Sequence record: NC_042098.1
DNA length: 64,000 nt
Strand: one strand, 5' to 3'
The first letter of the stretch is position 1, and every line of letters starts with the position of its first letter. Below are positions 3,001 to 46,736 of this stretch, in pieces. Made by a program: the position numbers and the translations under genes. The notes under the pieces are model-generated. The model searched no databases. It had not been told where the DNA came from and saw nothing but the letters and a program-made list of their open reading frames with translations.

Positions 3001-5238
3001 ACCCCGCAGGTTGCCCAGACTGTCTGTTACGCCACGACGCAGGTTATCCAGCGTCTCACGCCCCATCTCACCAAGTTCTGCTCCAGGGTTAACATTACTG
3101 CCGCGTTCATTGGAATCTTCCCCTTCACGATCAGGACGATAGTTCGGGTTAGCAATGAACTTCTGCATCATCTCCCAGTACATCTCGTGGTTAAAGACAT
3201 CCTGGCCATTAACCCGTTTGATGACGCCCATGTCTTTGAGCTGTGCCCGACTACCACTGTTGGCCATGGTATTCAGTGACTGCTCGACATTCGGCATATA
3301 CTGCGACTGGGCCTGCATAACGTTAGACAGGTTGTTACGCATCTGTGCCAGTTCGGGTGCATCGCCAATCTGATAATCACCAAAGGCTTTGGCCCGACCG
3401 GTTGCTTCCCGAGTGTCGAAACGTTTGTGCAAGAACTCATTGATCTCCTGCACTGCTTCTTTATTGGCATTGCCCCAGCCACTGGACTTCAAGTAGGTGT
3501 TGACGTTGAAGCCATCACCCGCTTCAGCATCCCGGGCAAAACGCATCGCTAATGCCACACGGGCATTGGGTGAGAGCTCCTGGTCGGGGTCGAGGGTTTC
3601 CACCATGGTATTGAAGGAACCTGCGGCCGAGGAGAACTCATTGCGATTAAAGATCGACGAACGCAGATCGACGTTCGCCCGTTTCTTGGAAGTGAAGCCA
3701 CCCTGGATGTGGTTGAAGTGCACTTCCGACACCGACCCGACATCAGCTTCCAGTTTATTGGCAATCGCCGTTTGCTGGGCGAGTTGTTTAGTCAGTAAGC
3801 CTGGAATCACCTCCACCAATGAACGCCGTGACATCTGATCCCAGACAGCCGGTTCAGTCAGGTCTTTCACGCCAGGGTTGTGCAACCGAGTACGGTTACC
3901 CATGGAGGCTGGTAATTGAAAGAGGGCGTTATTCAGGAAGGGGTTGACGACGCGCTTTTGTAACCGCGTGTGCCATTTATTCCCCTCGGCATTCGGATCG
4001 AAGTTCTCATCAAACGACTGACGGTTACGTAACCAGCCATTGATCAGACCCGGTGCCGCATTTGAGTAATAGCTTAAGTCATGGCCCATGCGGTTCAGAC
4101 CCGGGTTACGCGACAGTGCAGGACGGGCTAAAGAGGAAAGCATCATCGGCAACATACCGACCAGTCCTTGACCCGCCATCTGTCCGTAGTCACGGGCACC
4201 AAGCGAGCGCCCCATCATGCGGGCCTGTTGTGCACCCATCATGGCAGCACGAGCAGCAGCAATGCCACCCGAGGCGCGGTGGTTCATATCCTGGCTACGC
4301 TGATCCACCATGTTAAAGACGTTGTCAAACAGCCGGTTACCGAATTGCGAGACTGTGCCGCCTAACCCACCCAGTGCACGTTTACGAATCAACTCACGGG
4401 CCGAGGTAGAATGACTCATCTTTTCAAAGTCAGTTAAGCCGGTGTTCTTCACCAGACTTGACATGGCATCCAGACTGCGTTTGTAGAAACGTTCTTGCAT
4501 CTTGCCAATTGACAACTGCAGTTTATACGAACGGTACTGGAGCTCTAATGACTTGCGCTGGTAGTTGGCAGTGAACTGCTCATTAAAGCCAACGGTACGG
4601 GCTGTGAGGCGATGGATGCCTTGCATGAAGGCTAGACTGTCTGCAGAGACGCTCGCCTGTCTGGTGGCGACTGCGGCGGTCTGTGCCATGCTCTCTTTAT
4701 GCAGGGCCACAGCCAGCTGACTCGACTGCAGCGTAGCCTGCTGTAGCATGGTGACGTAGTCGTCGTTCTCGTTACCGGTTGACCCGTCATCCAGACCGGG
4801 GTCAGCGGGCTTGGTGCTGGAGACCGAATAATCGATGTCTTTATTCTCAGCCCAGACTTCAATTTGCTTTAAGACCTTCTCCGGCAATTTCCCACCGTAC
4901 ATCGATAATGCATCGAGGGTTAGGTCTTTGATGTCATTGACAGAGTTACGGGTATTACTTTTAACTTTATCGTATAGGTCATCTTTGAATCTTGCTGCGC
5001 GATCTTTTGCATCAAACGCAGGCGAAAACGATGCGGGTAACAAAGAGCGAATGATACGCTGAGGAGTGCCTTTAGTGAACACTTCCTCTTTGGCACCAGT
5101 CCAAAGGCCTGCGGCGAACTCACGAATCGCCCCGCCTTTACCCTTCTTCTTCGTACTTGCATCGTCACCGAAATCGAAGTCAAAGTCCAGGTCAAGGTCA
5201 CCCAGATCTTCGTACTCGACTTTGACATTCTCGGCCAT
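1..5238 (-). CDS. Tape-measure / tail-associated lysin protein (phiKZ gp181-like), N-terminal part; runs off the left edge
   Basis: ATG at 5238 (MAENVKVEYEDLGDLDLDFDFDFGDD...). The frame was open in every segment I translated, down to base 1, and the ORF track missed it because its stop is outside the window. Helical and Ala/Gly-rich, with a Gly-zipper segment (GSGVGGILGGAAMGAAIGSVVPVVGTAIGAIAGAIGALGGGAIG). Divergent from the vRNAP beta' gene, as gp181/gp180 are in phiKZ. Confidence 0.85.
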   Translation of the reverse strand, partial: MAENVKVEYEDLGDLDLDFDFDFGDDASTKKKGKGGAIREFAAGLWTGAKEEVFTKGTPQRIIRSLLPASFSPAFDAKDRAARFKDDLYDKVKSNTRNSVNDIKDLTLDALSMYGGKLPEKVLKQIEVWAENKDIDYSVSSTKPADPGLDDGSTGNENDDYVTMLQQATLQSSQLAVALHKESMAQTAAVATRQASVSADSLAFMQGIHRLTARTVGFNEQFTANYQRKSLELQYRSYKLQLSIGKMQERFYKRSLDAMSSLVKNTGLTDFEKMSHSTSARELIRKRALGGLGGTVSQFGNRLFDNVFNMVDQRSQDMNHRASGGIAAARAAMMGAQQARMMGRSLGARDYGQMAGQGLVGMLPMMLSSLARPALSRNPGLNRMGHDLSYYSNAAPGLINGWLRNRQSFDENFDPNAEGNKWHTRLQKRVVNPFLNNALFQLPASMGNRTRLHNPGVKDLTEPAVWDQMSRRSLVEVIPGLLTKQLAQQTAIANKLEADVGSVSEVHFNHIQGGFTSKKRANVDLRSSIFNRNEFSSAAGSFNTMVETLDPDQELSPNARVALAMRFARDAEAGDGFNVNTYLKSSGWGNANKEAVQEINEFLHKRFDTREATGRAKAFGDYQIGDAPELAQMRNNLSNVMQAQSQYMPNVEQSLNTMANSGSRAQLKDMGVIKRVNGQDVFNHEMYWEMMQKFIANPNYRPDREGEDSNERGSNVNPGAELGEMGRETLDNLRRGVTDSLGNLRGRLTREQEEEIRAQLSQARANSPEYYQVVLQQLRARYGEVAVNRIARRLDNSLGQSLRDRVNGFGGAAAAGAAGGSGGLGDSLRNMGESASNLFGKINSVRPDTSAVKQALLNAASSGKEALRNATTELQRRFGRQAVEEAASEIAQEAEVVRSSGVFNDGTADRASRTRLPSEGITAPDAGSASETAAIVQAQLDNNALLRETIGVLASVRDSVTATKDATIAQVTGDPDIMKDSVNERQGWLRKLSGRMSNQGKSSGLIRKVFKSLPNINSPVLTVAKWTTVMPAVLGFKATRGLWRMLRDKKREDASDPDHDGVRNNSVADLIRRRAQQKKEREEAQHAHDSDDHAKDKEKPTTLFGLVAGLFSSVTGLVSGIKEFGILGGLAKFLGLGWIGDIVKGIGSVISGGKGVMDELSDALGDDDEGGEEEGGRRRRRRRGGRRNRGGDGGGGPRPRGGLIRRLAGKAARGVRGLGRGIVGRTGGMLGRGVAGNLKLLVKGGGIVTAGVSALEAWDSYKAGDNAGVAEAAGSGVGGILGGAAMGAAIGSVVPVVGTAIGAIAGGAIGALGGGAIGRSLYTWFNDPGLLQQMRLRQYGVPDNDSSHVSAILKLEAALEPYVKTTDDGYASLDPKAPIAQLGSLFVDDPNDRDQVEQFAGWFLHRFKPVYLTHKAVAKQVLPSQAFMDLDKSTDEAAKYEIAKRAQQFDESSDHPYMFTGRIFPDLNATDRKQTEALVKDVLDRLRNKAQKMTTGKSASVFATGMDKVASSRELSSDMVKAINPNGDIPELKTVGHKESSWFTGDRTVVSAGDLLGGLLPKAGQPMDDLTALRMKVYGLPTLDVDRVSTLLQLELVMANKIKFADNGATFDGKASDIYRVVAASFGLSPSNQWSYKSWEPWFTRRFLPAYLAFASTVYTQTGDSRPTLAVPKMPPELKFAAATAMTNAKYSDGVNAISVWTIKTSPWSTGELNDDASVVQNHLNNLKAQVKQAQYSAEAVKGGVQ

Positions 5239-6908: not shown

Positions 6909-9900
6909 ATGATTCTTTATAATGCTTTCTTCCGTCGAACTGTAGTGCGCAAGAAAGAACAGATCTTTGGCCCGCGGTTCTTGCAACTGTCACAGTTTGA
7001 ATTACCCCGTGGGTCATTGCTTCATTATATCCCAACGGATCTGACTGAACAGGGGATTGAGAACAACGACCTGTTGATCAACCGTTACAGTGATGACATC
7101 TATATCGACCACGTACCACAGATCCAAACGCCGTTGGGTAACCCGCAGCGTAAACCGATCTCCCTGATGCCTGCGATCAAGCGTTATCACAACACCCACC
7201 GTCGCTTTAAGCTGGTGCGTAACATCAACTCCGTGATCCGCAACAAGCTGTACATGATCGTGGAGAACTACGCCATTGCACAGCATCAGTTGGTGTATCG
7301 TCCGGCCATGTATTCCAACTACTACCGTTGGTACAACATGCAGTACACGGTGATGCACAACATGACCCGGCTGCAAGGTGAGTCAGATCGCAACCAGTTT
7401 GTCTATCTGCCGATTCCTGCTTCGCTGCCACAGCTGGCCCAGCTGAAGATCTACGAAGAGCGTCTGTCTGCAGGCCTGGATAAAGTCAGTAATGGCACCG
7501 GACTTGAGAACTTCGATGACCTCAGTGCCGAAGCACGCATTGGTTACGCCATGGAAGCCATGCTGGAATACCAGGACACGGCGGACCTGAGTCAACCAAT
7601 GGCCCGTGACCAGGCGATGGCTTTCCAGACCCTGGTGATGAACGCCACCAATGACACAGTGAACCTGGCACAACGTATTCCCGGTTACTACAACGGCGAT
7701 GCAGGTTCCGTGCTGCGGGTCGGGATGGAAGCGTTGGGTGCGTATGCCTCGAAGGTGATGAACTTCACCCCACAGCTGTCCATGGCGGTGATGAACCGTT
7801 TACGTACGCCGGCGGATTACTGGTTCATTCACTTCTGGATGTGGCTCGGTAATCAACGCGAAGCCTCGCTGTTCAGTATGCTTGACCACGACAAGCTCGA
7901 TAAGATCCACTTGGTGCTGGGTAACGTTGGTGCGTACTCCGTCATCCGTTTGGATATTCTCGATCAGTGGCGTACTGAGATCTTAAGCAAGACCTCAAAC
8001 CCTGAAACCGCGGTGCAGAACTTCCGTAAACATATCCTGAAGTTCTTGACCCGTCTGTTTGATGTGAAGAACGGTAACGAACTGGTCATTGAACATCTTG
8101 ATGATGGAGCGGATGCACATGAGGTCGGTGAAGAAGGTCAGGAGATTGCGCCGGAGCAGGGCAGTGTGGTTCCGCCAACAGCAGACACCGGACTATTCGG
8201 TACTGAGCTTCCAACCCTGGACGACCCCGCCCCTGTCGTTGCGCCTAGCACTAAGAAGGGAACAAGTAAAGGAAAAGACATTGGTTCTGCTCTGAACGAC
8301 GAAGAGCCGATCGATGCCGTTGACCTCTACGAAACCCGCACTTTAGCCGATGACATCGATGACGATGAGTTTAACCACGACACTGAGAGCCGTCGGGGTG
8401 AAGCAGCAGCCTACACCGACATGACCACTAATCCGGAAGACGGGGTGTTGCTCTATCTGGAGCGCCTGAGCGATGCCGGTGTGTTGACGGTGGCGGAATA
8501 CAAACGCTTCCAGCAATTGGCCGTAGCGTATAAGAACATCCCCAATCCCGTGGGCGAAGGGACGTTAGCCGACCTGATGATTATCGACCCGTCAAAGGTC
8601 ACTGACCTCGGTGGTCTCGATGCCCCGGACTCAATCAGTATTATCGATAAGGGCTTACTCAAATCCTCCACCAAGGACTTTGATAAGAACTACATCAAGA
8701 ACCTGATGGAAGCGGATATCCTCAACGCCGTGTTGTCGATTCAGAACTCCGGTGTGGCGATCATCGATTACCAGCGTGAAGAGAAGAAAGACGCCCGCAA
8801 CAGCTACGTGGTTTACAGCGTGCAGGTGCAGCCGGTTGGCGGTAAAGTCACTACCCTGCGTTTTCGTGTCCCGAAGCTGAATGAAGATGGCACCTCAGTG
8901 GTCAATGGCGTGAAATCCCGGCTGCGTAAACAACGTGTGGATATTCCGATTCGTAAAGTCTCTGCCAGCAAAGTCTCATTAACCAGTTACTACGGTAAAC
9001 TGTTTATGGAGCGCTCTGAACTGTCGGTACACAACTACAGCGAATGGTTATCACGGCGTATCAAAGCGCTGGCGATTGCGGATACCCCAGAGATCACCCG
9101 TCTGGTACTGGGTCGCTCCTTTGATCCTAAGGTACGTGTCCCGCACCTGTATGCGATTCTGGCTTCGCAGTTCAAAGGCTTCCAGTATCTCGATTACACC
9201 TTCAACTTTAACCGCCGGGAAATGGTGGCGGTGTTTGGTGAAGAGGTGATTGAGAAATACGCTGAGAACCGTTTTGTGGTCTGTGGCATGATCGAAGACA
9301 GTCCGCTGTTGATGGATGATAACGGTACACTGTATCAAGCCAACAACGACGTGTTGTCAAACCTGGGTGATTTCGAAACCTTAATTGGTCTGGATGTTTC
9401 CAAGGCACCGATCGAAACTGTGGTGTTAGGGGTGTTCCGTCAGAAGGTACCGATTGGAGTTATCCTCGCGTACTACTACGGTCTGGGTGCGATGATTGAG
9501 CAGTTCAATCTGCAGGTGCGTACGGCTAACCGGGGTGAGCGTTATCAGCTGACCAAAGATGAACGGGCGATCTTGTTCAACGATGAAGTGCTGATCTTTA
9601 ACCGTACCGATCGTCTGGGTGCGATGTTACTGAACGGCTTTAACTCGTATGCCAAAGAAGTCAGTCGCTTCTCGCGGTATGACTTTGACCGTAAGTCGGT
9701 TTACCTGAACGTGCTCTCTTCTGCGGGCATGGGTGTGCGGTGGTTACGTGAGTTCGATCTGATGCGTGAGATGTACATCGATCCGATCACGCGTGAAGAA
9801 CTGCTGAAGATGAATGCGCCGGTGAAGTTTGATCTGCTGCTGGTTCATGGCACGAAGATGCTGCTGAATGATCAACACATTCGTGAGACCTCATTCCGTG

Positions 9901-41279: not shown

Positions 41280-42419
41280 ATGTCCATGATCGTGAAAATC
41301 ACCTCGGGTGAAGATAAAGCTGACAACAATGTGAGCAAAGGGTTTGAACTGATCCCGGTAGCGGCCGGTATGCGCACTGCCTTTGAGCGCGATGAACAAT
41401 CCCGCGCCTGGTTTAAGTTGTTCAATACGGATGCAGAAGGTATTGAACAGCAACTGCTCACCCGTCAGGTACTGGGTAACGTCTATGTGATGGAAGCCGG
41501 TAAGACTATCGCCAGTTTCTCCTCGGCCGATATCAGTGATATCCGGACGTCAGCAGAAGGCACAGTGTTCTTGAGCAGCCCTGCCAACGGTATCAGTAAC
41601 CAACCTTATACCGAGCCTGCTATCTCTGAGCTCAACGTACTGGGGTATAATGACCGCCTGCACGACTATACCGAGCTACCTTTCATCACCTCAGAAGAAG
41701 TGAATGATGCCCGGGTGTTTAAGTTTCACGCCAACTCAGAGCCAGAAGTCTGGTATGTCAATGCCGATAAAAAGTGGCAGCTGCATGAGCAGGCAACACT
41801 CAACCATCGTCAGTCTGGCGCAGCACCCGGTGATCGCGCAGATGTAGAAGAGTTTGCCAAGGAGCTCACCCCGGTCGTATTTGGCAGCACCGACGTTTCA
41901 GCCAGCAATGATAACATGATGTTTATCAAAACGTTGGCGGCGACGGTGATGACTGCACACGAGAAGAACGCCATTGACTACATGGGTCTGGAATTACTGT
42001 CAATCATTCGAGTGCCGTTCTCGCGCTTAAAAACGCTGGAAGAGTATCTGCGCGTGTGCAAGTATCCGGTGCTGTGTAAGTTCGCCACTGAAGGTACACG
42101 TATTGTGAGTTACCATGTGCGGGCGTATGAGCCAATCAATGACATCCTGCCTGGTACCGAGCTTCTGCTCCAACGTCTCAAAAGCGAACAGAAAGGCCTG
42201 GTAAAGAACCTGGTTGATAAGATCGTTAAGTACTACCGTGCGGATTGCACCGTCGTACCGGTCGAGCCCAACCTGGTTTTTGATGCACTCGAGGATCGGG
42301 CGCTGATTGAGGAGTTCAGACGGTTGCTTAAAATCCAGCTGGACTTCATCATGAACGATGACGGTCATTGCCATACCGCAGTGATCAGTTATCCGAGTAT
42401 CATCCGTATGGGTGCGTAG
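41280..42419 (+). CDS. Hypothetical protein (379 aa)
   Basis: RBS TAAGGA; no recognised motif. Confidence 0.78.
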   Translation: MSMIVKITSGEDKADNNVSKGFELIPVAAGMRTAFERDEQSRAWFKLFNTDAEGIEQQLLTRQVLGNVYVMEAGKTIASFSSADISDIRTSAEGTVFLSSPANGISNQPYTEPAISELNVLGYNDRLHDYTELPFITSEEVNDARVFKFHANSEPEVWYVNADKKWQLHEQATLNHRQSGAAPGDRADVEEFAKELTPVVFGSTDVSASNDNMMFIKTLAATVMTAHEKNAIDYMGLELLSIIRVPFSRLKTLEEYLRVCKYPVLCKFATEGTRIVSYHVRAYEPINDILPGTELLLQRLKSEQKGLVKNLVDKIVKYYRADCTVVPVEPNLVFDALEDRALIEEFRRLLKIQLDFIMNDDGHCHTAVISYPSIIRMGA

Positions 42420-42459
42420 CAGGTATTTGTAAATAAATACTAGATATCTGCTATTACTA

Positions 42460-42715
42460 TGTAAACTACGACGCTCCGAAAATCCCCCAAGATAAAGGAG
42501 TCATAACCTCTCCGTTATGCGCCTCGTAGTTTTCTTTTGAGACAGGCAAGGACGTCGACTGGGTTCAGCTGATACTGTAAAGTGTTGCTGTGTGTGCCCG
42601 GTCCCTTGCCGTCTCCTTTTTCTCGATTTGTGCGATTCTCTTCCAGGCTGTTCTTACCTGATCTCGTGTCAGGAAACAGATCGAAGACAGACATGCGAAT
42701 CAACTTTGGTAGTGC
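42460..42715 (+). ncRNA. Candidate structured sRNA (three long hairpins)
   Basis: AAACTACGA/TCGTAGTTT; GAGAC-A-GGCAAGGAC/GTCCCTTGCCGTCTC; GATTC.TCTTC...GAAGA...GAATC. No credible ORF. Confidence 0.4.
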
Positions 42716-42772
42716 CTACTATATACACACTTAGCTATAAATTTTACTCAAAAGCAATATTAAGGATGACCC

Positions 42773-42940
42773 ATGGACAAGCAGAGAGAAGATTCTATCG
42801 TTGAGATGATGACACTCGCTCAGCGATTAAATAACTTAGTCGTTGGAATGCAAGTCCGCAAAGCCCAGTTAACGTCAGGTTCCGCCAAAGTCGTCGCTGA
42901 TGCAATCAGCAAAGCGAATGTGAAACCTGAGGATCACTGA
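42773..42940 (+). CDS. Small hypothetical protein (55 aa, MDKQREDSIVEMMTLAQRLNNLVVG...), below track cutoff
   Basis: RBS TAAGGA; amphipathic helical sequence. Confidence 0.62.
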   Translation: MDKQREDSIVEMMTLAQRLNNLVVGMQVRKAQLTSGSAKVVADAISKANVKPEDH

Positions 42941-42944
42941 GGTA

Positions 42945-43285
42945 GCCGTAAACGTAGTGGGTATGGTGGGGATCAATGATAGCCCTGCTCGGTGAGTTTG
43001 TTAATCCCCGCCGTATCGCTTCGTAGAACACAGGGTCACTCATGACGTGGGGAGTGGCATAAACACCTGGGGTAGAAGTCCCAACTGCATCCAAAATTCA
43101 ATGACGCCTGTCACAGCCGCTTAAGCGCGCAGAAGATGACTTGTGTGCTCTGTGGCGATACTCGGACTTGCCAGCCTGTGGGGGCGGAGTAAAGTCTGGG
43201 TGTTAGCCCGCTGCCATGTTACCACGTGAAAGTCGTGGGGGCGTCACCCTATTAGATCGATCGCTGACAGTACGTGTTTATGCTT
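42945..43285 (+). ncRNA. Candidate structured RNA with T-loop-type hairpins
   Basis: TGACGCC/GGCGTCA long-range helix; CCACG-TGAAA-GT-CGTGG; ends near TTATGC at about 43278. Confidence 0.35.
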
Positions 43286-43328
43286 ACTTGCTTCTCTGGT
43301 TACGCTAACCTATCGTGAGGAGATAAAC

Positions 43329-43625
43329 ATGAATCTGTATATAGTCAAACGTGATGATAGAGCTGTGGATTTCGAACAGTGTGCGGGGATGGTGGTTGCT
43401 GCGTCGTCTGAGGATGAAGCTTTGCGATTGCACCCGATGGTTCTTGACTCTAGCCACCCAGACAATGCTGAGCGGCACCTGGCTGAATCGGCGGAGAACT
43501 TCGAGGATGGTACGTTGTACGGCTGGCCTAGCCAGGACCGTTTTCACGAACTGACCATAACCTTGATAGGAACCACACACTTGACCGTTCCGCAAGTCCT
43601 GTTACACGACTATAAAGGCGGTTGA
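43329..43625 (+). CDS. Hypothetical protein (98 aa) of a common phage type (vVVaAxSEDEAlrlHP)
   Basis: RBS GAGGAG; hairpin GTCCGGG-GTAATA-CCCGGAC downstream. Confidence 0.75.
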   Translation: MNLYIVKRDDRAVDFEQCAGMVVAASSEDEALRLHPMVLDSSHPDNAERHLAESAENFEDGTLYGWPSQDRFHELTITLIGTTHLTVPQVLLHDYKGG

Positions 43626-43744
43626 TCTAAGTCCGGGGTAATACCCGGACACCCTATTCTGTTTTTCAGTACATCACTGGAAGATACTATCGAGAGCAGC
43701 CACTCCGATACTCTAACTTATAAAGTTTAAAAAGGATAATAACG

Positions 43745-44398
43745 ATGTCAACCGAAATGACCATTTCTCGTGCACTGGCTACAGTGAAGTCTTTGAATGT
43801 CCGCATCAAAGATATCTCTAAAAAGCAGGTGCTGATTCTGCCAACCGCCGGTACTGGCGACATGCAATCGGTGATCAACAACAGCATCACTGTTACCGAT
43901 GCTGAAGCCGCCATCCAGAATAACTGGAATGCGCTGAACGACATGATCAAAGTGCGTAACGATATTCGTGCGAAGATCATCCTGTCGAACGCCACAACCA
44001 AAGTGACCATCGCCGGTAAAGAATACACCATTGTTGAGGCATTGGACTTCCGCAACTCCCTGGTCGAAAAGAAAGACACGGTTGAGTGCCTGAAGCGCAA
44101 CTACGACTCCACAATGAAAGTTCACCGCCAGCAGGGCGACATCTACGAAAAGCGTTTAAGCGATGTGCGCTCCGAAGCCCTGGCCTCCGGCAAGAAGTTT
44201 GATGAAGCCAGCTTGAAGACCTTCACCGATCCAATCGATGTGAAGATGAAACCAGGCCTGATCGATCCTCTGGGTATCTCAGCAGTTATTGAGAAGCTGG
44301 ACAAAGAGATCGCTGACTTCGAACTTAACGCCGACTACGCGTTGTCCGAATCTAACGCAACGACCAAGATCACTGTTGAACTTGGTAACATTGCTTAA
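43745..44398 (+). CDS. Coiled-coil protein, DIP1984/DUF6847-like (217 aa)
   Basis: MTISRAL...I..SNATTKV...TIVEAL...LSESNATTKITVEL: internal SNATTK repeat and all-helical heptads. Family assignment is from memory of the pattern and needs an HMM check. RBS AAGGA. Confidence 0.6.
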   Translation: MSTEMTISRALATVKSLNVRIKDISKKQVLILPTAGTGDMQSVINNSITVTDAEAAIQNNWNALNDMIKVRNDIRAKIILSNATTKVTIAGKEYTIVEALDFRNSLVEKKDTVECLKRNYDSTMKVHRQQGDIYEKRLSDVRSEALASGKKFDEASLKTFTDPIDVKMKPGLIDPLGISAVIEKLDKEIADFELNADYALSESNATTKITVELGNIA

Positions 44399-44445
44399 TC
44401 CGTATTAAAAGGCTTGTCTTCGTTTGACGAAAGATCAAACACCGC

Positions 44446-44483
44446 CTTCCTATTTGGCCGGATGGAAGTAAAATAACCGGCCA
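44446..44483 (+). ncRNA. H-type pseudoknot 1
   Basis: CTTCC(44446-50)/GGAAG(44464-68) and TGGCCGG(44455-61)/CCGGCCA(44477-83), with A-rich loop TAAAATAA. Confidence 0.5.
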
Positions 44484-44494
44484 GCCATTATACA

Positions 44495-44560
44495 TCTGTA
44501 GGTCGCAGGTTCGATTCCTGTCGGGGTGAAACCCGTAGCTCAGTCGGTTAGAGCAGCAGA
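44495..44560 (+). ncRNA. Circularly permuted tRNA-like module (T-arm, loop-closed acceptor stem, D-arm); Y-RNA/YrlA-like topology
   Basis: TCTGT-AGGTC-GCAGG-TTCGATT-CCTGT-CGGGGTGAAACCCG-TA-GCTC-AGTCGGTTA-GAGC-A-GCAGA: every tRNA arm has canonical length but the halves are swapped. No anticodon loop and no CCA. Confidence 0.8.
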
Positions 44561-44603
44561 ACAACTGCTTATGCTAAAAGCAATGATCTTTGGGATCATC
44601 AAT

Positions 44604-44632
44604 GGTGTACTGTGAGCACCTTGAAATCACAG
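44604..44632 (+). ncRNA. H-type pseudoknot 2
   Basis: GGTGT/GCACC stem; loop CTGTGA(44610-15) pairs with TCACAG(44627-32). Confidence 0.5.
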
Positions 44633-44633
44633 G

Positions 44634-44757
44634 TCTAAAGCTTAAAGCTATAACGTATAATGACTAAAGCTCTAAAGGTTTAAACTTATAACGTTAAAAA
44701 GATCTACACTCCCTGATGACTGTGTTCGTCGGGCTATAACGCTAAAACCTTTTAAAC
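44634..44757 (+). repeat. Degenerate 7-8 nt A-rich tandem repeats (YYWAAAG / TATAACG)
   Basis: TCTAAAG CTTAAAG CTATAACG TATAATG ACTAAAG CTCTAAAG GTTTAAAC TTATAACG TTAAAAAG ... CTATAACG CTAAAAC TTTTAAAC. Confidence 0.7.
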
Positions 44758-45492
44758 AAATCCTGGGTATTCCTCCGCTGTGAGGATGGGTAATGTGGAG
44801 TGTGGTCTGCCACGTATCGCCGCCAGGCTGTCTTGCGGAGACAAGTCTTTCCCTTTTGCAATAGGTGACCTAATGACAGGCACTGCATTAATGATCATTG
44901 AGCAACCACAACCGGAATTCAATATCCCGTTGAGGTCGCCTTATCCTGCCCTTCATGACGTAAGGTTTTCTATGTTCCCTGTTATGGGTGAGCCTGAGAA
45001 CGAAGGGTTTGAACAAGATTCAGAAACTGACGCATTACATTGAGGAGATTCAATCGCGCAGGTTCTTAACCGACTAAAGCCAGGGTGACTTGTGTTATCT
45101 TGGTAAAAGGTGAACGCGTCGTTACAGCGCATACGACTGAATGGGCCGATCCCCCCTTCGGAGTAATATTAGCCCAGATCCATTGCACACCGATAAGTCA
45201 ATGGCTAGCCAGACACACAAAAAAACTATTATGCTTCGACAGATGGTAGGTGCCTGATTACTACAATTCGATTCGATACCTCAACTAAAAGGCGGACACA
45301 AGGGCCGTTATGAGTGAAGCACCAGGAAACTATACCTTGGTAAGGCCCCAGGTTTTTTATCCTTACCAAGGTTCTCTTTCTTTTACTGCCTGATAATGGG
45401 TGGATGTCTTAGTCACCTTTCTTTCACAGAGGCAACAACCTAAGGCGTCTGCCCGCCCTATAACCCGAGTCGTCTAGCGACAAGACACCGTC

Positions 45493-45573
45493 AGACCCAT
45501 TTGGTAACAGCCTAACTTACCTGTTACCCAACCTATGACGGAAACAGGTGGTTCAACTCCACCTCTTGGGTCT
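45493..45573 (+). ncRNA. Second tRNA-like element (7-bp closing stem, 8-bp hairpin, T-arm)
   Basis: AGACCCA/TGGGTCT; GGTAACAG/CTGTTACC; AGGTGG-TTCAACT-CCACCT. Confidence 0.5.
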
Positions 45574-45649
45574 TAGGTATTGGCTTAGGCAAACTCCGTC
45601 GCGGCTTTACCCTCAATAGGCTGCGTTGCGTAAGTCAGTACCGTGCTGT

Positions 45650-45805
45650 GCGTCGTACTCCCTGATGAGGCGCCCGACGTTAAAAGGCACGAAACGGGGA
45701 CAGAGGATACTCCATCGGTGATTGCAATCAACCACGCTGGGGTTTATACAGGCACTTGAGAGACACGCTGGTTTCTCGTTGCCTGTCCCTTTGTCCCGTC
45801 GGAGT
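45650..45805 (+). ncRNA. Type I hammerhead ribozyme
   Basis: Stem I ACTCC/GGAGT; core CTGATGA (45662-68) and GAAA (45691-94); stem II closed by G-C; stem III CGGGGACAGAGG/CCTTTGTCCCG; GUC cleavage triplet at 45798-45800; loop-II CGACG pairs with upstream CGTCG. Confidence 0.82.
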
Positions 45806-46208
45806 CCCTTGCGTTCCTGGAGGGATGACACCGCGTTAAGACTGATCCCCTTAACGAAGTTGCAATAGCCGGGGGGTGTTTCTTGCAAAGGTTACTCACA
45901 GCAGACTGCCTCCGCCAATTGCGGATGGCTTAGGCCCTCAGCCCGTCAGGAAGTTGTCGTTGAATAAATGACAGCTGGACTAGGGTTGCATTATAACCCG
46001 GCAAATGTGCAGCCTGTTTTTTCTTCATGTGTACCTGAACCGGTTCAGGAGCCTACAGATGAGGGAACGACGGGAAGCATATTGCTACCGATCATTTGCT
46101 GTGTGACCGGGCCAAGGATGGCATATACCGGAACCAGTAGTCGTATTCAGCGCAGGTGCGCTTTCTCTTCCTTATCTTGTGGTTAAACCGCACCTGTCTG
46201 GATCATAT

Positions 46209-46237
46209 GTGCCGGGGTCACACCTGGCGCTTATGCC
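46209..46237 (+). terminator. Hairpin plus TTATGCC closing the non-coding locus
   Basis: GTGCCGGG-GTCACA-CCTGGCGC-TTATGCC. Confidence 0.6.
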
Positions 46238-46263
46238 GTCTGAGTTGTATCCTTTTTTACTCC

Positions 46264-46271
46264 TACATTAC
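46264..46271 (+). promoter_or_regulatory. Early promoter motif TACATTAC
   Basis: One mismatch to TATATTAC; upstream of the 46314 cluster. Confidence 0.55.
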
Positions 46272-46313
46272 GAAGCTGATATACCCATCAATTCAATTTA
46301 AAGGAGTTTAGTT

Positions 46314-46736
46314 ATGAAGAACGTTACTATTGCTATTGGTCGTAATCCGCTGTCCAACCAGAAATGGATTCTGGATCAGATCGTGAGTCTGGTGAAGTCC
46401 GGCAAGTCCGACATCTTCATCGTAAATACTGACTCACGGGTTTCCACTGCGGTACTCAATGCCTTGAAAGAGTATACGAAGGATGATGCGGAATACACTC
46501 GCTTGGTTGCTGAGAACGGTGTCATGTTCCACACAACCGAGACCGAAGATCTGCAAACGCTGGATGATGCTAAGATGAACAGCCGCTCGGCGATTCTGGC
46601 CAACATGCTGTTCAGCCTGCCATTGGTCAAACAGTGTCGTGATCTGGCCCGTCACCATGTCCCGGTCTTTGTGAGTGCCACACCTGCCATGTCTGGTAAG
46701 GTGCCGGCTTCCGCCCATACCAAGTTCCTCGATTAA
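46314..46736 (+). CDS. Hypothetical protein (140 aa)
   Basis: RBS AAAGGAG. Confidence 0.78.
   Translation: MKNVTIAIGRNPLSNQKWILDQIVSLVKSGKSDIFIVNTDSRVSTAVLNALKEYTKDDAEYTRLVAENGVMFHTTETEDLQTLDDAKMNSRSAILANMLFSLPLVKQCRDLARHHVPVFVSATPAMSGKVPASAHTKFLD

Follow-up and report, generated by a model that had tools for sequence, protein, structure and literature searches.

Is the long stretch with hardly an annotated gene that follows gp202 in Erwinia phage vB_EamM_Desertfox a structured RNA, and if so, does it belong with the gp202 protein? Desertfox (NC_042098 / MG655268) is a PhuZ-encoding jumbo phage of the genus Agricanvirus with a 272-kb genome; it forms a nucleus, and its close relative RAY is the nucleus-forming member that has been characterised (PMC10299810). 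We analysed a window of 64,000 nucleotides (nt) of this genome; all coordinates below are window positions unless a relative is named (window position = genome position - 124000), and all the features of the locus lie on the + strand. The gp202 gene (43745-44398) encodes a protein of 217 amino acids (aa) and is separated from gp204 by about 1.9 kb in which RefSeq annotates a single gene, gp203. An initial annotation, made from the letters alone, had taken these 1.9 kb for one structured RNA system that assembles with the gp202 protein into a ribonucleoprotein (RNP). Much of what it described proves real, with covariation behind most of the elements, but the region is an island of separate modules rather than one RNA. 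The first of them, which we call RNA-A (44408-44850), is a structured RNA of about 440 nt that stands behind members of the gp202 family in phages as distant as T5-like and jumbo phages.

The region behind gp202 evolves as RNA

Sixteen database phages are at least 99% identical to the locus, and AH06 (81% identity) is the sole informative one in the set. An exact-protein look-up for gp202 homologs gave syntenic metagenomic relatives (L005-L010, 53-59% protein identity); L011 (phage pEa_SNUABM_37) and L012 are more distant (46-47%). With 80 further loci fetched from IMG/VR, the survey of homolog loci came to 89 in total. Covariation in RNA-A was assessed in an alignment of nine relatives and in a wide sample, A5, of 25 representative lineages.

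Three non-coding blocks are kept in the relatives (44400-44863, 44871-45311 and 45464-46312). Substitutions favour the third codon position in gp202, gp203 and gp204, and 3-nt periodicity is absent from the three stretches tested for it, namely RNA-A, a conserved stretch behind gp203 that we call B2, and the RNA at the 3' end of the locus. RNA-A has diverged by 10-27% among relatives, compared with 25-40% for the gp202 coding sequence. From the pattern of periodicity and divergence we conclude that the RNA blocks are selected as RNA and that gp203 is a genuine small gene. The initial statement that the 1.9 kb lack a convincing open reading frame (ORF) is therefore wrong in part, given gp203 (44873-45043); there is also a site at which relatives carry a further ORF. 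Rfam at its gathering thresholds gave no match in the whole 64-kb window, and ARAGORN found neither a transfer RNA (tRNA) nor a transfer-messenger RNA (tmRNA), standard or permuted.

RNA-A is a closed, pseudoknotted RNA with an A-rich array

The ends of RNA-A are joined by a closing helix of 12 bp, P1 (44408-44419/44839-44850), which continues into the extensions P1a and P1b. Its variants stay paired in relatives (CUUGUCU/AGACAAG, CUUGCUC/GAGCAAG, CUUGUUU/AAACAAG), and a single-sequence fold recovers it (z = -4.3). The full model, comprising P1, pseudoknot 1, a tRNA-like cloverleaf, pseudoknot 2 and a helix termed Px, is 94.4% paired in the nine relatives, compared with 38-49% in slid controls. 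Pairs changed on both sides number 22, against 9.1 in shuffles (0/500; nine-sequence alignment).

Pseudoknot 1 (44446-44482), which had been noticed from the Desertfox sequence, is of the H type with an A-rich loop 3. Compensatory changes occur in both of its stems, stem 1 (44446-44450/44464-44468) being 100% and stem 2 (44456-44461/44477-44482) 85% paired, and it recurs with other sequences in the T5-like and Vequintavirinae copies. The second proposed pseudoknot (44604-44632) fared less evenly. Its stem 2 (44610-44615/44627-44632) is solid: every pair forms (100%), and four of them have changed on both sides; stem 1 (44604-44607/44617-44620) is doubtful, with 53.6% of pairs formed in the alignment, and the element is either a hairpin or a pseudoknot. 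The dozen or so A-rich repeats reported next to it could be reproduced: a regular expression finds twelve YAAAG-type units of 7-8 nt (44635-44757), nine at 44635-44701 and three at 44736-44757, and TRF gives a period of 7 with only 5.9 copies. A heptad array with the consensus nAAAGnU lies at the same place in the 25 representative RNA-A sequences.

Helix Px (44762-44827) is formed by UCC-NNN at 44762-44766 and NNN-GG at 44823-44827, encloses 3' hairpins and is flanked by two family-wide motifs, AAAUCC and GGCUG. Across the 25 lineages it is 99.2% paired (slid controls 30-52%), with 30 double changes against 9.0 in shuffles (0/500). An 8-bp helix (44430-44437/44584-44591) that had been proposed to enclose pseudoknot 1 and the tRNA mimic as one domain did not hold up, being invariant within the clade and showing no family-wide signal. 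A helix just before the A-rich array was rejected as a general domain closer as well (mean score 5.4 versus 4.9 in shuffles, no family-wide signal). The closing helix, the pseudoknots and the resemblance of GAAAG...GGCU..AUCGG to RNase P CR-I/CR-V had suggested RNase P RNA, tmRNA or a group I intron; all three were dismissed, since no model matched and the domain organisation differs. For tmRNA in particular, ARAGORN finds none, a cap closes the acceptor, and stop codons abound in the A-rich tract.

RNA-A accompanies the gp202 family across distant phages

The gp202 protein belongs to a family known as T5.085 in T5 nomenclature and as phrog_1491 (E 1e-72). By tblastn its homologs occur in 724 phage records, which include T5-like phages, ~145-kb phages of Klebsiella, Enterobacter and Cronobacter, and phages of Pseudomonas, Vibrio, Bacillus and Clostridium. 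We searched the flanks of the homologs with a descriptor consisting of the 3' motif plus a closing helix whose 5' strand lies where the flank begins. Scores of 11 or more, with both elements after the gp202 homolog, came from 75 of the 89 loci, compared with 7/89 in reverse complements, 4/89 in upstream flanks and 4/89 in shuffled sequences; at a score of at least 12 the count was 63 versus 7, 0 and 0 in the same controls. The closing helices found in this way have many different sequences. Inspection raised the number of loci with RNA-A beside the gp202 family to about 88 of 89, in at least 25 RNA lineages that include T5-like, Vequintavirinae and metagenomic phages, and the RNA usually heads a tRNA array. 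The loci missed by the descriptor are mostly false negatives, with variant motifs or with an extra small ORF or insert ahead of the RNA. L004 is the sole locus without RNA-A, with 5 kb searched on either side. Whether homologs carry tRNA-like elements or A-rich repeats in their 3' flanks had been raised as a check on the initial proposal, and for the first ~450 nt the answer is positive: they carry the same RNA.

The arrangement is tight. RNA-A starts 6-60 nt past the stop codon in most lineages (9 nt in Desertfox) and measures 270-460 nt across the family; the ORF-free stretch after the gene is typically 330-900 nt, and in many lineages the first tRNA of the array follows 366-530 nt past the stop codon. 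In the T5-like phage DT571/2 and a Klebsiella Mydovirus, the ~340 nt past the gene differ in sequence and share an architecture, in which a closing helix is combined with an H-type pseudoknot (its loop A-rich), with an array of A-rich repeats and with AAAUCC...GGCUG. In line with the initial annotation, no sigma-70-like promoter was found on the + strand between the gp202 gene and the RNA. Because the two are only 9 nt apart, which leaves no room for a promoter, the gene and RNA-A most likely share one transcript.

Some irregular loci came to light in this survey. In Klebsiella phage vB_KpnM_NDO71 an annotated 'tRNA-Cys' (L014 4686-4761) overlaps the 5' part of RNA-A; the Rfam tRNA model does not report it at E <= 0.01, and the annotation is probably an error. 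Past RNA-A, L012 (~7090-7390) has several tRNA-like segments whose D and T arms are clear; ARAGORN does not call them, and they may be degenerate or unusual tRNAs. In one metagenomic lineage (L050, L052, L069 and L082) the first ~400 nt past the gp202 homolog, ahead of the RNA-A-like sequence, contain odd simple repeats of the GGAAAA type and long palindromes.

The gp202 protein

The predicted structure of gp202 (AlphaFold2; predicted local distance difference test 89.5) is made up mainly of long helices, with small beta elements beside two SNATTK motifs. These motifs hold the most conserved residues of the family: S81, N82, A83 and T85 in the first, and S203, N204, A205 and T207 in the second, are invariant or nearly so among 61-63 homologs. 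The ORF, the predicted fold and the conserved residues thus agree with the 217-aa helical protein with an internal SNATTK repeat that had been described from the sequence. The protein is made, since mass spectrometry of a crude RAY lysate covered 43% of the RAY protein, which has the same sequence (PMC6690015).

Its description as 'DIP1984-like' is a fair label for an inconclusive relationship. A PDB sequence search and Foldseek searches against PDB and BFVD returned only 3KDQ (DIP1984 of Corynebacterium diphtheriae) and uncharacterised phage proteins, which account for all the BFVD matches. 3KDQ is therefore the sole solved relative, and the similarity is weak: a profile match (E 0.008) over ~80 residues that include the SN-containing motif, and a top Foldseek match with E 0.01, probability 1.0, template-modelling scores of 0.38/0.52 and 15% identity. 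Unlike DIP1984, gp202 is longer and internally duplicated. PF20935 (DUF6847) gave a weak match in 5 of 63 family members only, and NCBIfam at E <= 0.1 gave only weak matches to unrelated families and no DIP1984-type family.

The label 'tail fiber protein', attached to phrog_1491 and to the RefSeq product of gp202, has spread over hundreds of phage records; neither the sequence nor the predicted fold nor the genomic context (early/tRNA region) backs it. Literature searches gave one incidental mention of DIP1984 and nothing relevant for T5.085/T5p083, RNAX or new ornate phage RNAs.

RNA-A of Desertfox contains a permuted tRNA mimic

Between pseudoknot 1 and the array, RNA-A of Desertfox carries a circularly permuted tRNA-like domain with a capped acceptor (domain #1, 44495-44560). 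Its elements follow one another in the order anticodon-stem 3' strand, variable loop AGGUC, T arm (44505-44521), acceptor-like hairpin (44522-44535), U8-A9, D arm (44538-44554) and anticodon-stem 5' strand, and its helices are all 94-100% paired. The Rfam model of the bacterial Y RNA YrlA (RF02553), the sole Rfam match at E <= 5 within 42400-46500, aligns with 44497-44560 (44.5 bits, E 7.7e-8; model positions 23-87 of 114). This match and the compensated acceptor hairpin confirm the permuted tRNA module of the initial annotation. In AH06 (37.3 bits) the acceptor hairpin is fully compensated, from which we conclude that domain #1 is one folded domain; L011 matches over the full length of the model (41.9 bits).

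The Desertfox score is below the gathering threshold of 69, and the tRNA-like part alone matches, with the Ro-binding stem unaligned. The same model also gives 30 bits where two ordinary tRNA genes adjoin (L096 12555-12623, minus strand), so we take the match to reflect geometry rather than Y-RNA identity. No canonical tRNA was called in the window, and domain #1, with its capped acceptor, lacks an anticodon loop. Being permuted and capped, it cannot, judging from this predicted structure, be aminoacylated. No TROVE domain was found in gp199, gp201, gp202, gp204, gp205 or ten further large ORFs of the window. More generally, tRNA-tRNA junctions in arrays are a likely source of false Y-RNA-like calls with the YrlA model.

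The tRNA-like insert is specific to lineages, and the T5-like and Vequintavirinae copies of RNA-A do not have it. A true tRNA (Rfam 65 bits) occupies the variable region, which lies between pseudoknot 1 and the array, in L056, and an independent capped, permuted tRNA mimic (YrlA model 32.4 bits) occupies it in the distant L083 lineage. Depending on the lineage, the variable arm of RNA-A thus carries nothing special, a true tRNA or, as in Desertfox, a capped tRNA mimic. Isolated T-arm-like hairpins (GGUUCGAUUCC) inside or just past RNA-A in L054 (~3710-3730) and L070 (~3990-4060) suggest, from their sequence, repeated capture of tRNA fragments.

A second tRNA-like domain, a predicted hammerhead and a 3' RNA

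Farther downstream lies a tRNA-like domain in normal order (domain #2, 45463-45571). It has an acceptor stem (45463-45469/45565-45571), U8, a D arm (45472-45486), a 6-bp anticodon stem (45488-45493/45536-45541) and a T arm (45547-45563), and its anticodon loop is replaced by an insert of ~42 nt with a hairpin (45503-45528). Its four helices (acceptor, D, anticodon, T) reach 100% pairing and show compensation; ARAGORN and the Rfam tRNA model both fail to call the domain. What had been listed as a second T-arm module is real and was understated, being a whole tRNA-like cloverleaf.

About 85 nt past domain #2 there is a type-I hammerhead (45650-45805), also foreseen in the initial annotation. It consists of stem I (45657-45661/45801-45805, ACUCC/GGAGU), CUGAUGA (45662-45668), stem II (45669-45690), GAA (45691-45693) and a stem III of 12-13 bp (45694-45706/45788-45799) that carries an insert of ~94 nt; A45694 pairs with U45799, and C17 is position 45800. 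A strand ahead of stem I (45650-45655) pairs with loop II (45675-45680) in a pseudoknot of 5-6 bp. The core, C3-U4-G5-A6-N7-G8-A9, G12-A13-A14, A15.1-U16.1 and H17, is present in 11 sequences, with U or A at N7 and with C, U or A, never G, at H17. In the same 11 sequences stems I and III and the loop-II pseudoknot covary: stem I occurs as ACUCC/GGAGU, UUCUCC/GGAGAG, UUUAAA/UUUAGA and UAUUAA/UUAAUG, stem III in six variants, and the pseudoknot is compensated in L096 (GGACG/CGUCC) and L012 (CGACU/AGUCG). Stem II is bulged, 97% paired and topped by a conserved 11-nt loop. Because MAFFT misplaced a gap at the cleavage site, under-counting stem I in Desertfox and AH06, anchor-based extraction from each sequence was used instead. 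The intact, covarying core supports a ribozyme that would cut the transcript, with self-cleavage predicted at 45800|45801.

Across the Agricanvirus-like clade the stem III insert is structured and ~80-98 nt long. A core search in public contigs found minimal hammerheads, with a short stem III hairpin, another stem I and a compensated pseudoknot, in L096 and L101; the former lies directly past two CCA-encoding tRNAs and the latter in an ordinary intergenic region. L011 and L012 carry the hammerhead core too, and a metagenome scan for it gave four loci, three of them duplicates. Rfam hammerhead models gave no match at E <= 5 in 42400-46500, nor at E <= 1 in the minimal L096 copy; since this obvious copy is also missed, the silence of Rfam is uninformative. 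In Desertfox the miss is probably due to the unusual stem II and to the insert in stem III. Pseudoknots between stems I and II are documented for phage hammerheads, and it has been proposed that prophage hammerheads flanking genes divide long transcripts into mRNAs the length of an operon or a gene (PMC3088659).

The predicted 3' cleavage product, which would start with a 5'-OH, is a structured domain of ~440 nt (45801-46241). RNAalifold on the alignment of the whole 3' RNA (RNA-D) gave 241 pairs, 59 of them with compensatory changes, and the full-length 3' RNA occurs in the Agricanvirus-like clade only. The locus had been said to end at a hairpin terminator. The terminal hairpin is there and conserved (46204-46235, followed by AUGCCGU); as a terminator it is not borne out, since at 46204-46241 the hairpin is followed by CCGUCUGAG with no U-run, and a terminator scan does not call one. 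The motif CTACATTAC, considered as a recurrent promoter upstream of gp204, was rejected (12 matches in the window versus 11.3 expected). In the T5-like Escherichia phage DT571/2 a sequence of 636 nt (L013 7579-8214) is annotated as 'rnaX, stable RNA with unknown functions'. It has a tRNA-like start (Rfam tRNA 39 bits, 7642-7713) and ends at a tRNA-Arg, a layout like that of domain #2 plus the 3' RNA, yet without sequence similarity: an nhmmer profile search found none, and rnaX was discarded as a homolog of the 3' RNA.

The modules behind gp202 differ in phylogenetic range, RNA-A being as widespread as the protein family and the hammerhead occurring also in unrelated contexts, and gp203 lies among them. 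On these grounds we abandon the view of the 1.9 kb as a single structured RNA system. The locus is a stable-RNA (tRNA) island in which the canonical tRNAs have been lost and the structured RNAs around them kept.

What RNA-A may do with gp202

We propose that the gp202 protein has RNA-A as its RNA partner. Nascent gp202 would load in cis onto this RNA, which would derive from the 3' untranslated region of its own message, and the 7-nt-periodic YAAAG array would be a platform for several copies of the protein, each with two SNATTK motifs. The particle may act on or with tRNAs or tRNA-binding host factors, as a decoy or shield against tRNA-targeting nucleases or as an organiser of the tRNA-island transcript. 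The hammerhead cut at 45800|45801 would part the RNA island, left with a 2',3'-cyclic phosphate end, from a structured 5'-OH RNA that leads into gp204; in principle an RtcB-type ligase could use these ends, and the genus encodes an RtcB-like protein (PMC6690015). We hold this combination of partnership, cis assembly, array platform, tRNA role and hammerhead separation tentatively, as nearly an even matter. Its more general form, in which gp202/T5.085 and RNA-A are a previously unrecognised RNP that ranges from T5-like phages and Vequintavirinae to jumbo phages, assembles in cis at the head of tRNA islands, presents a tRNA or a mimic of one and protects or manages the tRNA supply against host tRNA-targeting defences, we regard as possible and rather doubtful.

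Several points weigh against such a partnership. The family is mildly acidic (median isoelectric point 5.7), and Pfam, NCBIfam and PADLOC searches with gp202 gave no significant family and no recognised RNA-binding domain. Its only structural relative, 3KDQ, has no known function. We found no expression data for RNA-A itself. The adjacency of gene and RNA could come from shared transcription rather than from physical partnership, and ROOL, an RNA of similar context, has no identified protein partner, ROOL and GOLLD forming RNA-only complexes (PMC12286853). The ~94-nt insert in stem III might slow folding of the hammerhead. An RNP is plausible all the same; that gp202 binds RNA-A, oligomerises on its repeats and 'displays' the tRNA mimic are steps that we infer.

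If RNA-A, and perhaps the 3' RNA too, were an RNA-only machine like GOLLD or ROOL, gp202 would merely be the upstream cistron that supplies transcription. RNA-A is indeed large, pseudoknotted and heavily covarying, and like those RNAs it is borne by phages beside tRNA islands and sometimes has a tRNA embedded in it (L056; PMC12286853); an acidic gp202 with no RNA-binding signature would also fit. What speaks against an RNA-only machine is that the adjacency survives where the proteins are only ~25-35% identical and other neighbours differ, that the 7-nt periodic single-stranded array resembles a platform for a multimeric protein, and that the GOLLD and ROOL models of Rfam do not match. We consider this unlikely on balance. 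A cis-acting element is a little less likely still: RNA-A might stabilise the 3' end of the gp202 mRNA after RNase P or RNase E has freed the tRNAs, or be a leader of the array that serves as an antitermination or processing platform. It would suit this that RNA-A invariably stands after the gene and ahead of a same-strand untranslated array, that the first tRNA often lies right past P1, and that P1 places the RNA-A 3' end in a long helix, which would block 3' exonucleases. Against it, an RNA of 300-450 nt that has pseudoknots, a heptad array and conserved single-stranded motifs goes far beyond what a stabiliser needs, some lineages (T5-like L013) have a promoter and an ordinary gene past the RNA instead of tRNAs, and the module is kept in Desertfox despite the loss of all canonical tRNAs (PMC6690015).

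Two further explanations strike us as very improbable. The tRNA-like domain could mark a bacterial Y RNA (YrlA) that works with Ro60/Rsr, given that YrlA is the only Rfam match (44.5 bits) and that L011 matches over the full model length (41.9 bits). Also for a Y RNA, RtcB is a known neighbour of rsr-yrlA in Salmonella. The phage genus encodes an RtcB-like protein (PMC6690015). The score under the gathering threshold of 69, the unaligned Ro-binding stem, the 30 bits that the same model gives on a junction of ordinary tRNAs, the location of the domain within a 440-nt RNA and the absence of a TROVE domain from the ORFs tested all speak against this. Equally improbable is that the region consists of decaying tRNA genes and spacer, or of unannotated small ORFs, with no function at the RNA level. 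tRNAs do come and go here, with a tRNA-Asn deleted and a Leu/Met slot empty, and one small ORF, gp203, is real. This explanation is contradicted by the covariation and periodicity tests: covariation is extensive, the non-coding blocks, which lack codon periodicity, match or exceed the flanking genes in conservation, and RNA-A is conserved over distant phage families. Of the readings weighed, we thus prefer the partnership of RNA-A with gp202.

Relation to known systems

By context, the nearest analogues of RNA-A are GOLLD and ROOL, whose function is unknown, as is that of RNA-A (PMC12286853). Their Rfam models gave no match at the gathering threshold in the window or at E <= 5 in 42400-46500. 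RNA-A differs from them in being smaller (270-460 nt), in always following one protein gene directly, in its 7-nt periodic A-rich array and in its occurrence in phages of Gram-negative hosts, T5 among them.

YrlA and domain #1 both have a T arm, a capped acceptor-like hairpin and a D arm, with the equivalent of the anticodon stem running into the remaining RNA. In the Salmonella rsr-yrlBA operon the Y RNA is encoded just 3' of the protein gene, as RNA-A is of gp202. The differences are that the match is sub-threshold with the Ro-binding helix unaligned, that gp202 is not a TROVE protein and that the mimic is an optional insert in a larger RNA. The order that the RNP would have, a protein gene followed at once by its structured RNA on the same transcript, is known from TnpB/IscB with omega-RNA and from smpB-ssrA. 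This is an analogy of layout only: gp202 shows no homology to any of these proteins or RNAs, ARAGORN finds no tmRNA, and no guide or tag is evident. The hammerhead resembles the type-I hammerheads of phages and prophages in its complete core, three stems, H17 of C, U or A, a pseudoknot of 5-6 bp between loop II and the 5' flank, and its position between parts of transcription units (PMC3088659); it differs, in the Desertfox clade, in the ~80-98-nt insert in stem III, the bulged stem II with an 11-nt loop and the failure of Rfam to detect it.

No Rfam family corresponds to RNA-A, and no paper describing it was found in the searchable literature, which is incomplete. No counterpart is described for its constant association with a single protein family, and we see this core finding as a new class; in the hammerhead and the tRNA mimics we see new variants of kinds already known. 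If the proposed partnership is true, gp202/T5.085-RNA-A would be a new class of phage RNP beside the function-less GOLLD and ROOL. GOLLD and ROOL are still without a known function or partner, and RNA-A supplies a candidate partner gene and a laboratory system, so the role of large tRNA-island RNAs becomes directly testable: RNA-A occurs in hundreds of sequenced phages, including the model phage T5, where genetics and biochemistry are easy. The recurrence of a tRNA or a mimic in the variable arm bears on the debate over the reasons for phage-borne tRNAs and over the ways in which phages evade tRNA-cleaving defences. The locus also adds a hammerhead subclass that current Rfam models miss and two corrections to annotation, 'tail fiber protein' for phrog_1491 being unsupported and the Klebsiella-phage 'tRNA-Cys' probably wrong.

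Other features of the locus

Between RNA-A and gp203 lies an empty tRNA slot (44851-44872), exactly where relatives have tRNAs: tRNA-Leu(taa) in L005 (7109-7191) and tRNA-Met(cat) in L009 and L010. The gp203 gene encodes an acidic protein of 56 aa; its length is kept at 56-57 aa in L005, L007 and L009, and substitutions are distributed over the codon positions as, for example, 7/3/17. It is followed by B2 (45044-45311), which is 67-76% identical to relatives and shows no 3-nt periodicity, and then by an indel site (45312-45462). Here relatives carry an ORF of 172 aa (phrog_2586), and Desertfox has a 12-bp inverted repeat (45334-45372). The ORF is present in L097 (6148-6663), a Desertfox-like contig of 99.6% identity, and in L002 (5632-6150); since L097 has it and Desertfox does not, its presence is polymorphic. 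A search of Pfam with this ORF gave no significant domain and weak P-loop matches (E 0.02-0.08), and it could be a mobile gene. The first gene past the RNA island is gp204 (46314-46736, 140 aa, phrog_11689), an ORF annotated in RefSeq with coding periodicity.

A second low-coding stretch, of ~900 nt, lies upstream of gp201 (42420-43328). Its sole annotated ORF is 55 aa long, and parts of it are 73-78% conserved relative to AH06. Relatives hold a tRNA-Asn there, upstream of the gp201 homolog. RAY has this tRNA-Asn(gtt) (L015 2277-2352), and in Desertfox it has been removed by a precise deletion at ~43099/43100, where the flanks join cleanly. The deletion agrees with the published tRNA counts of zero for Desertfox and one for RAY (PMC6690015).

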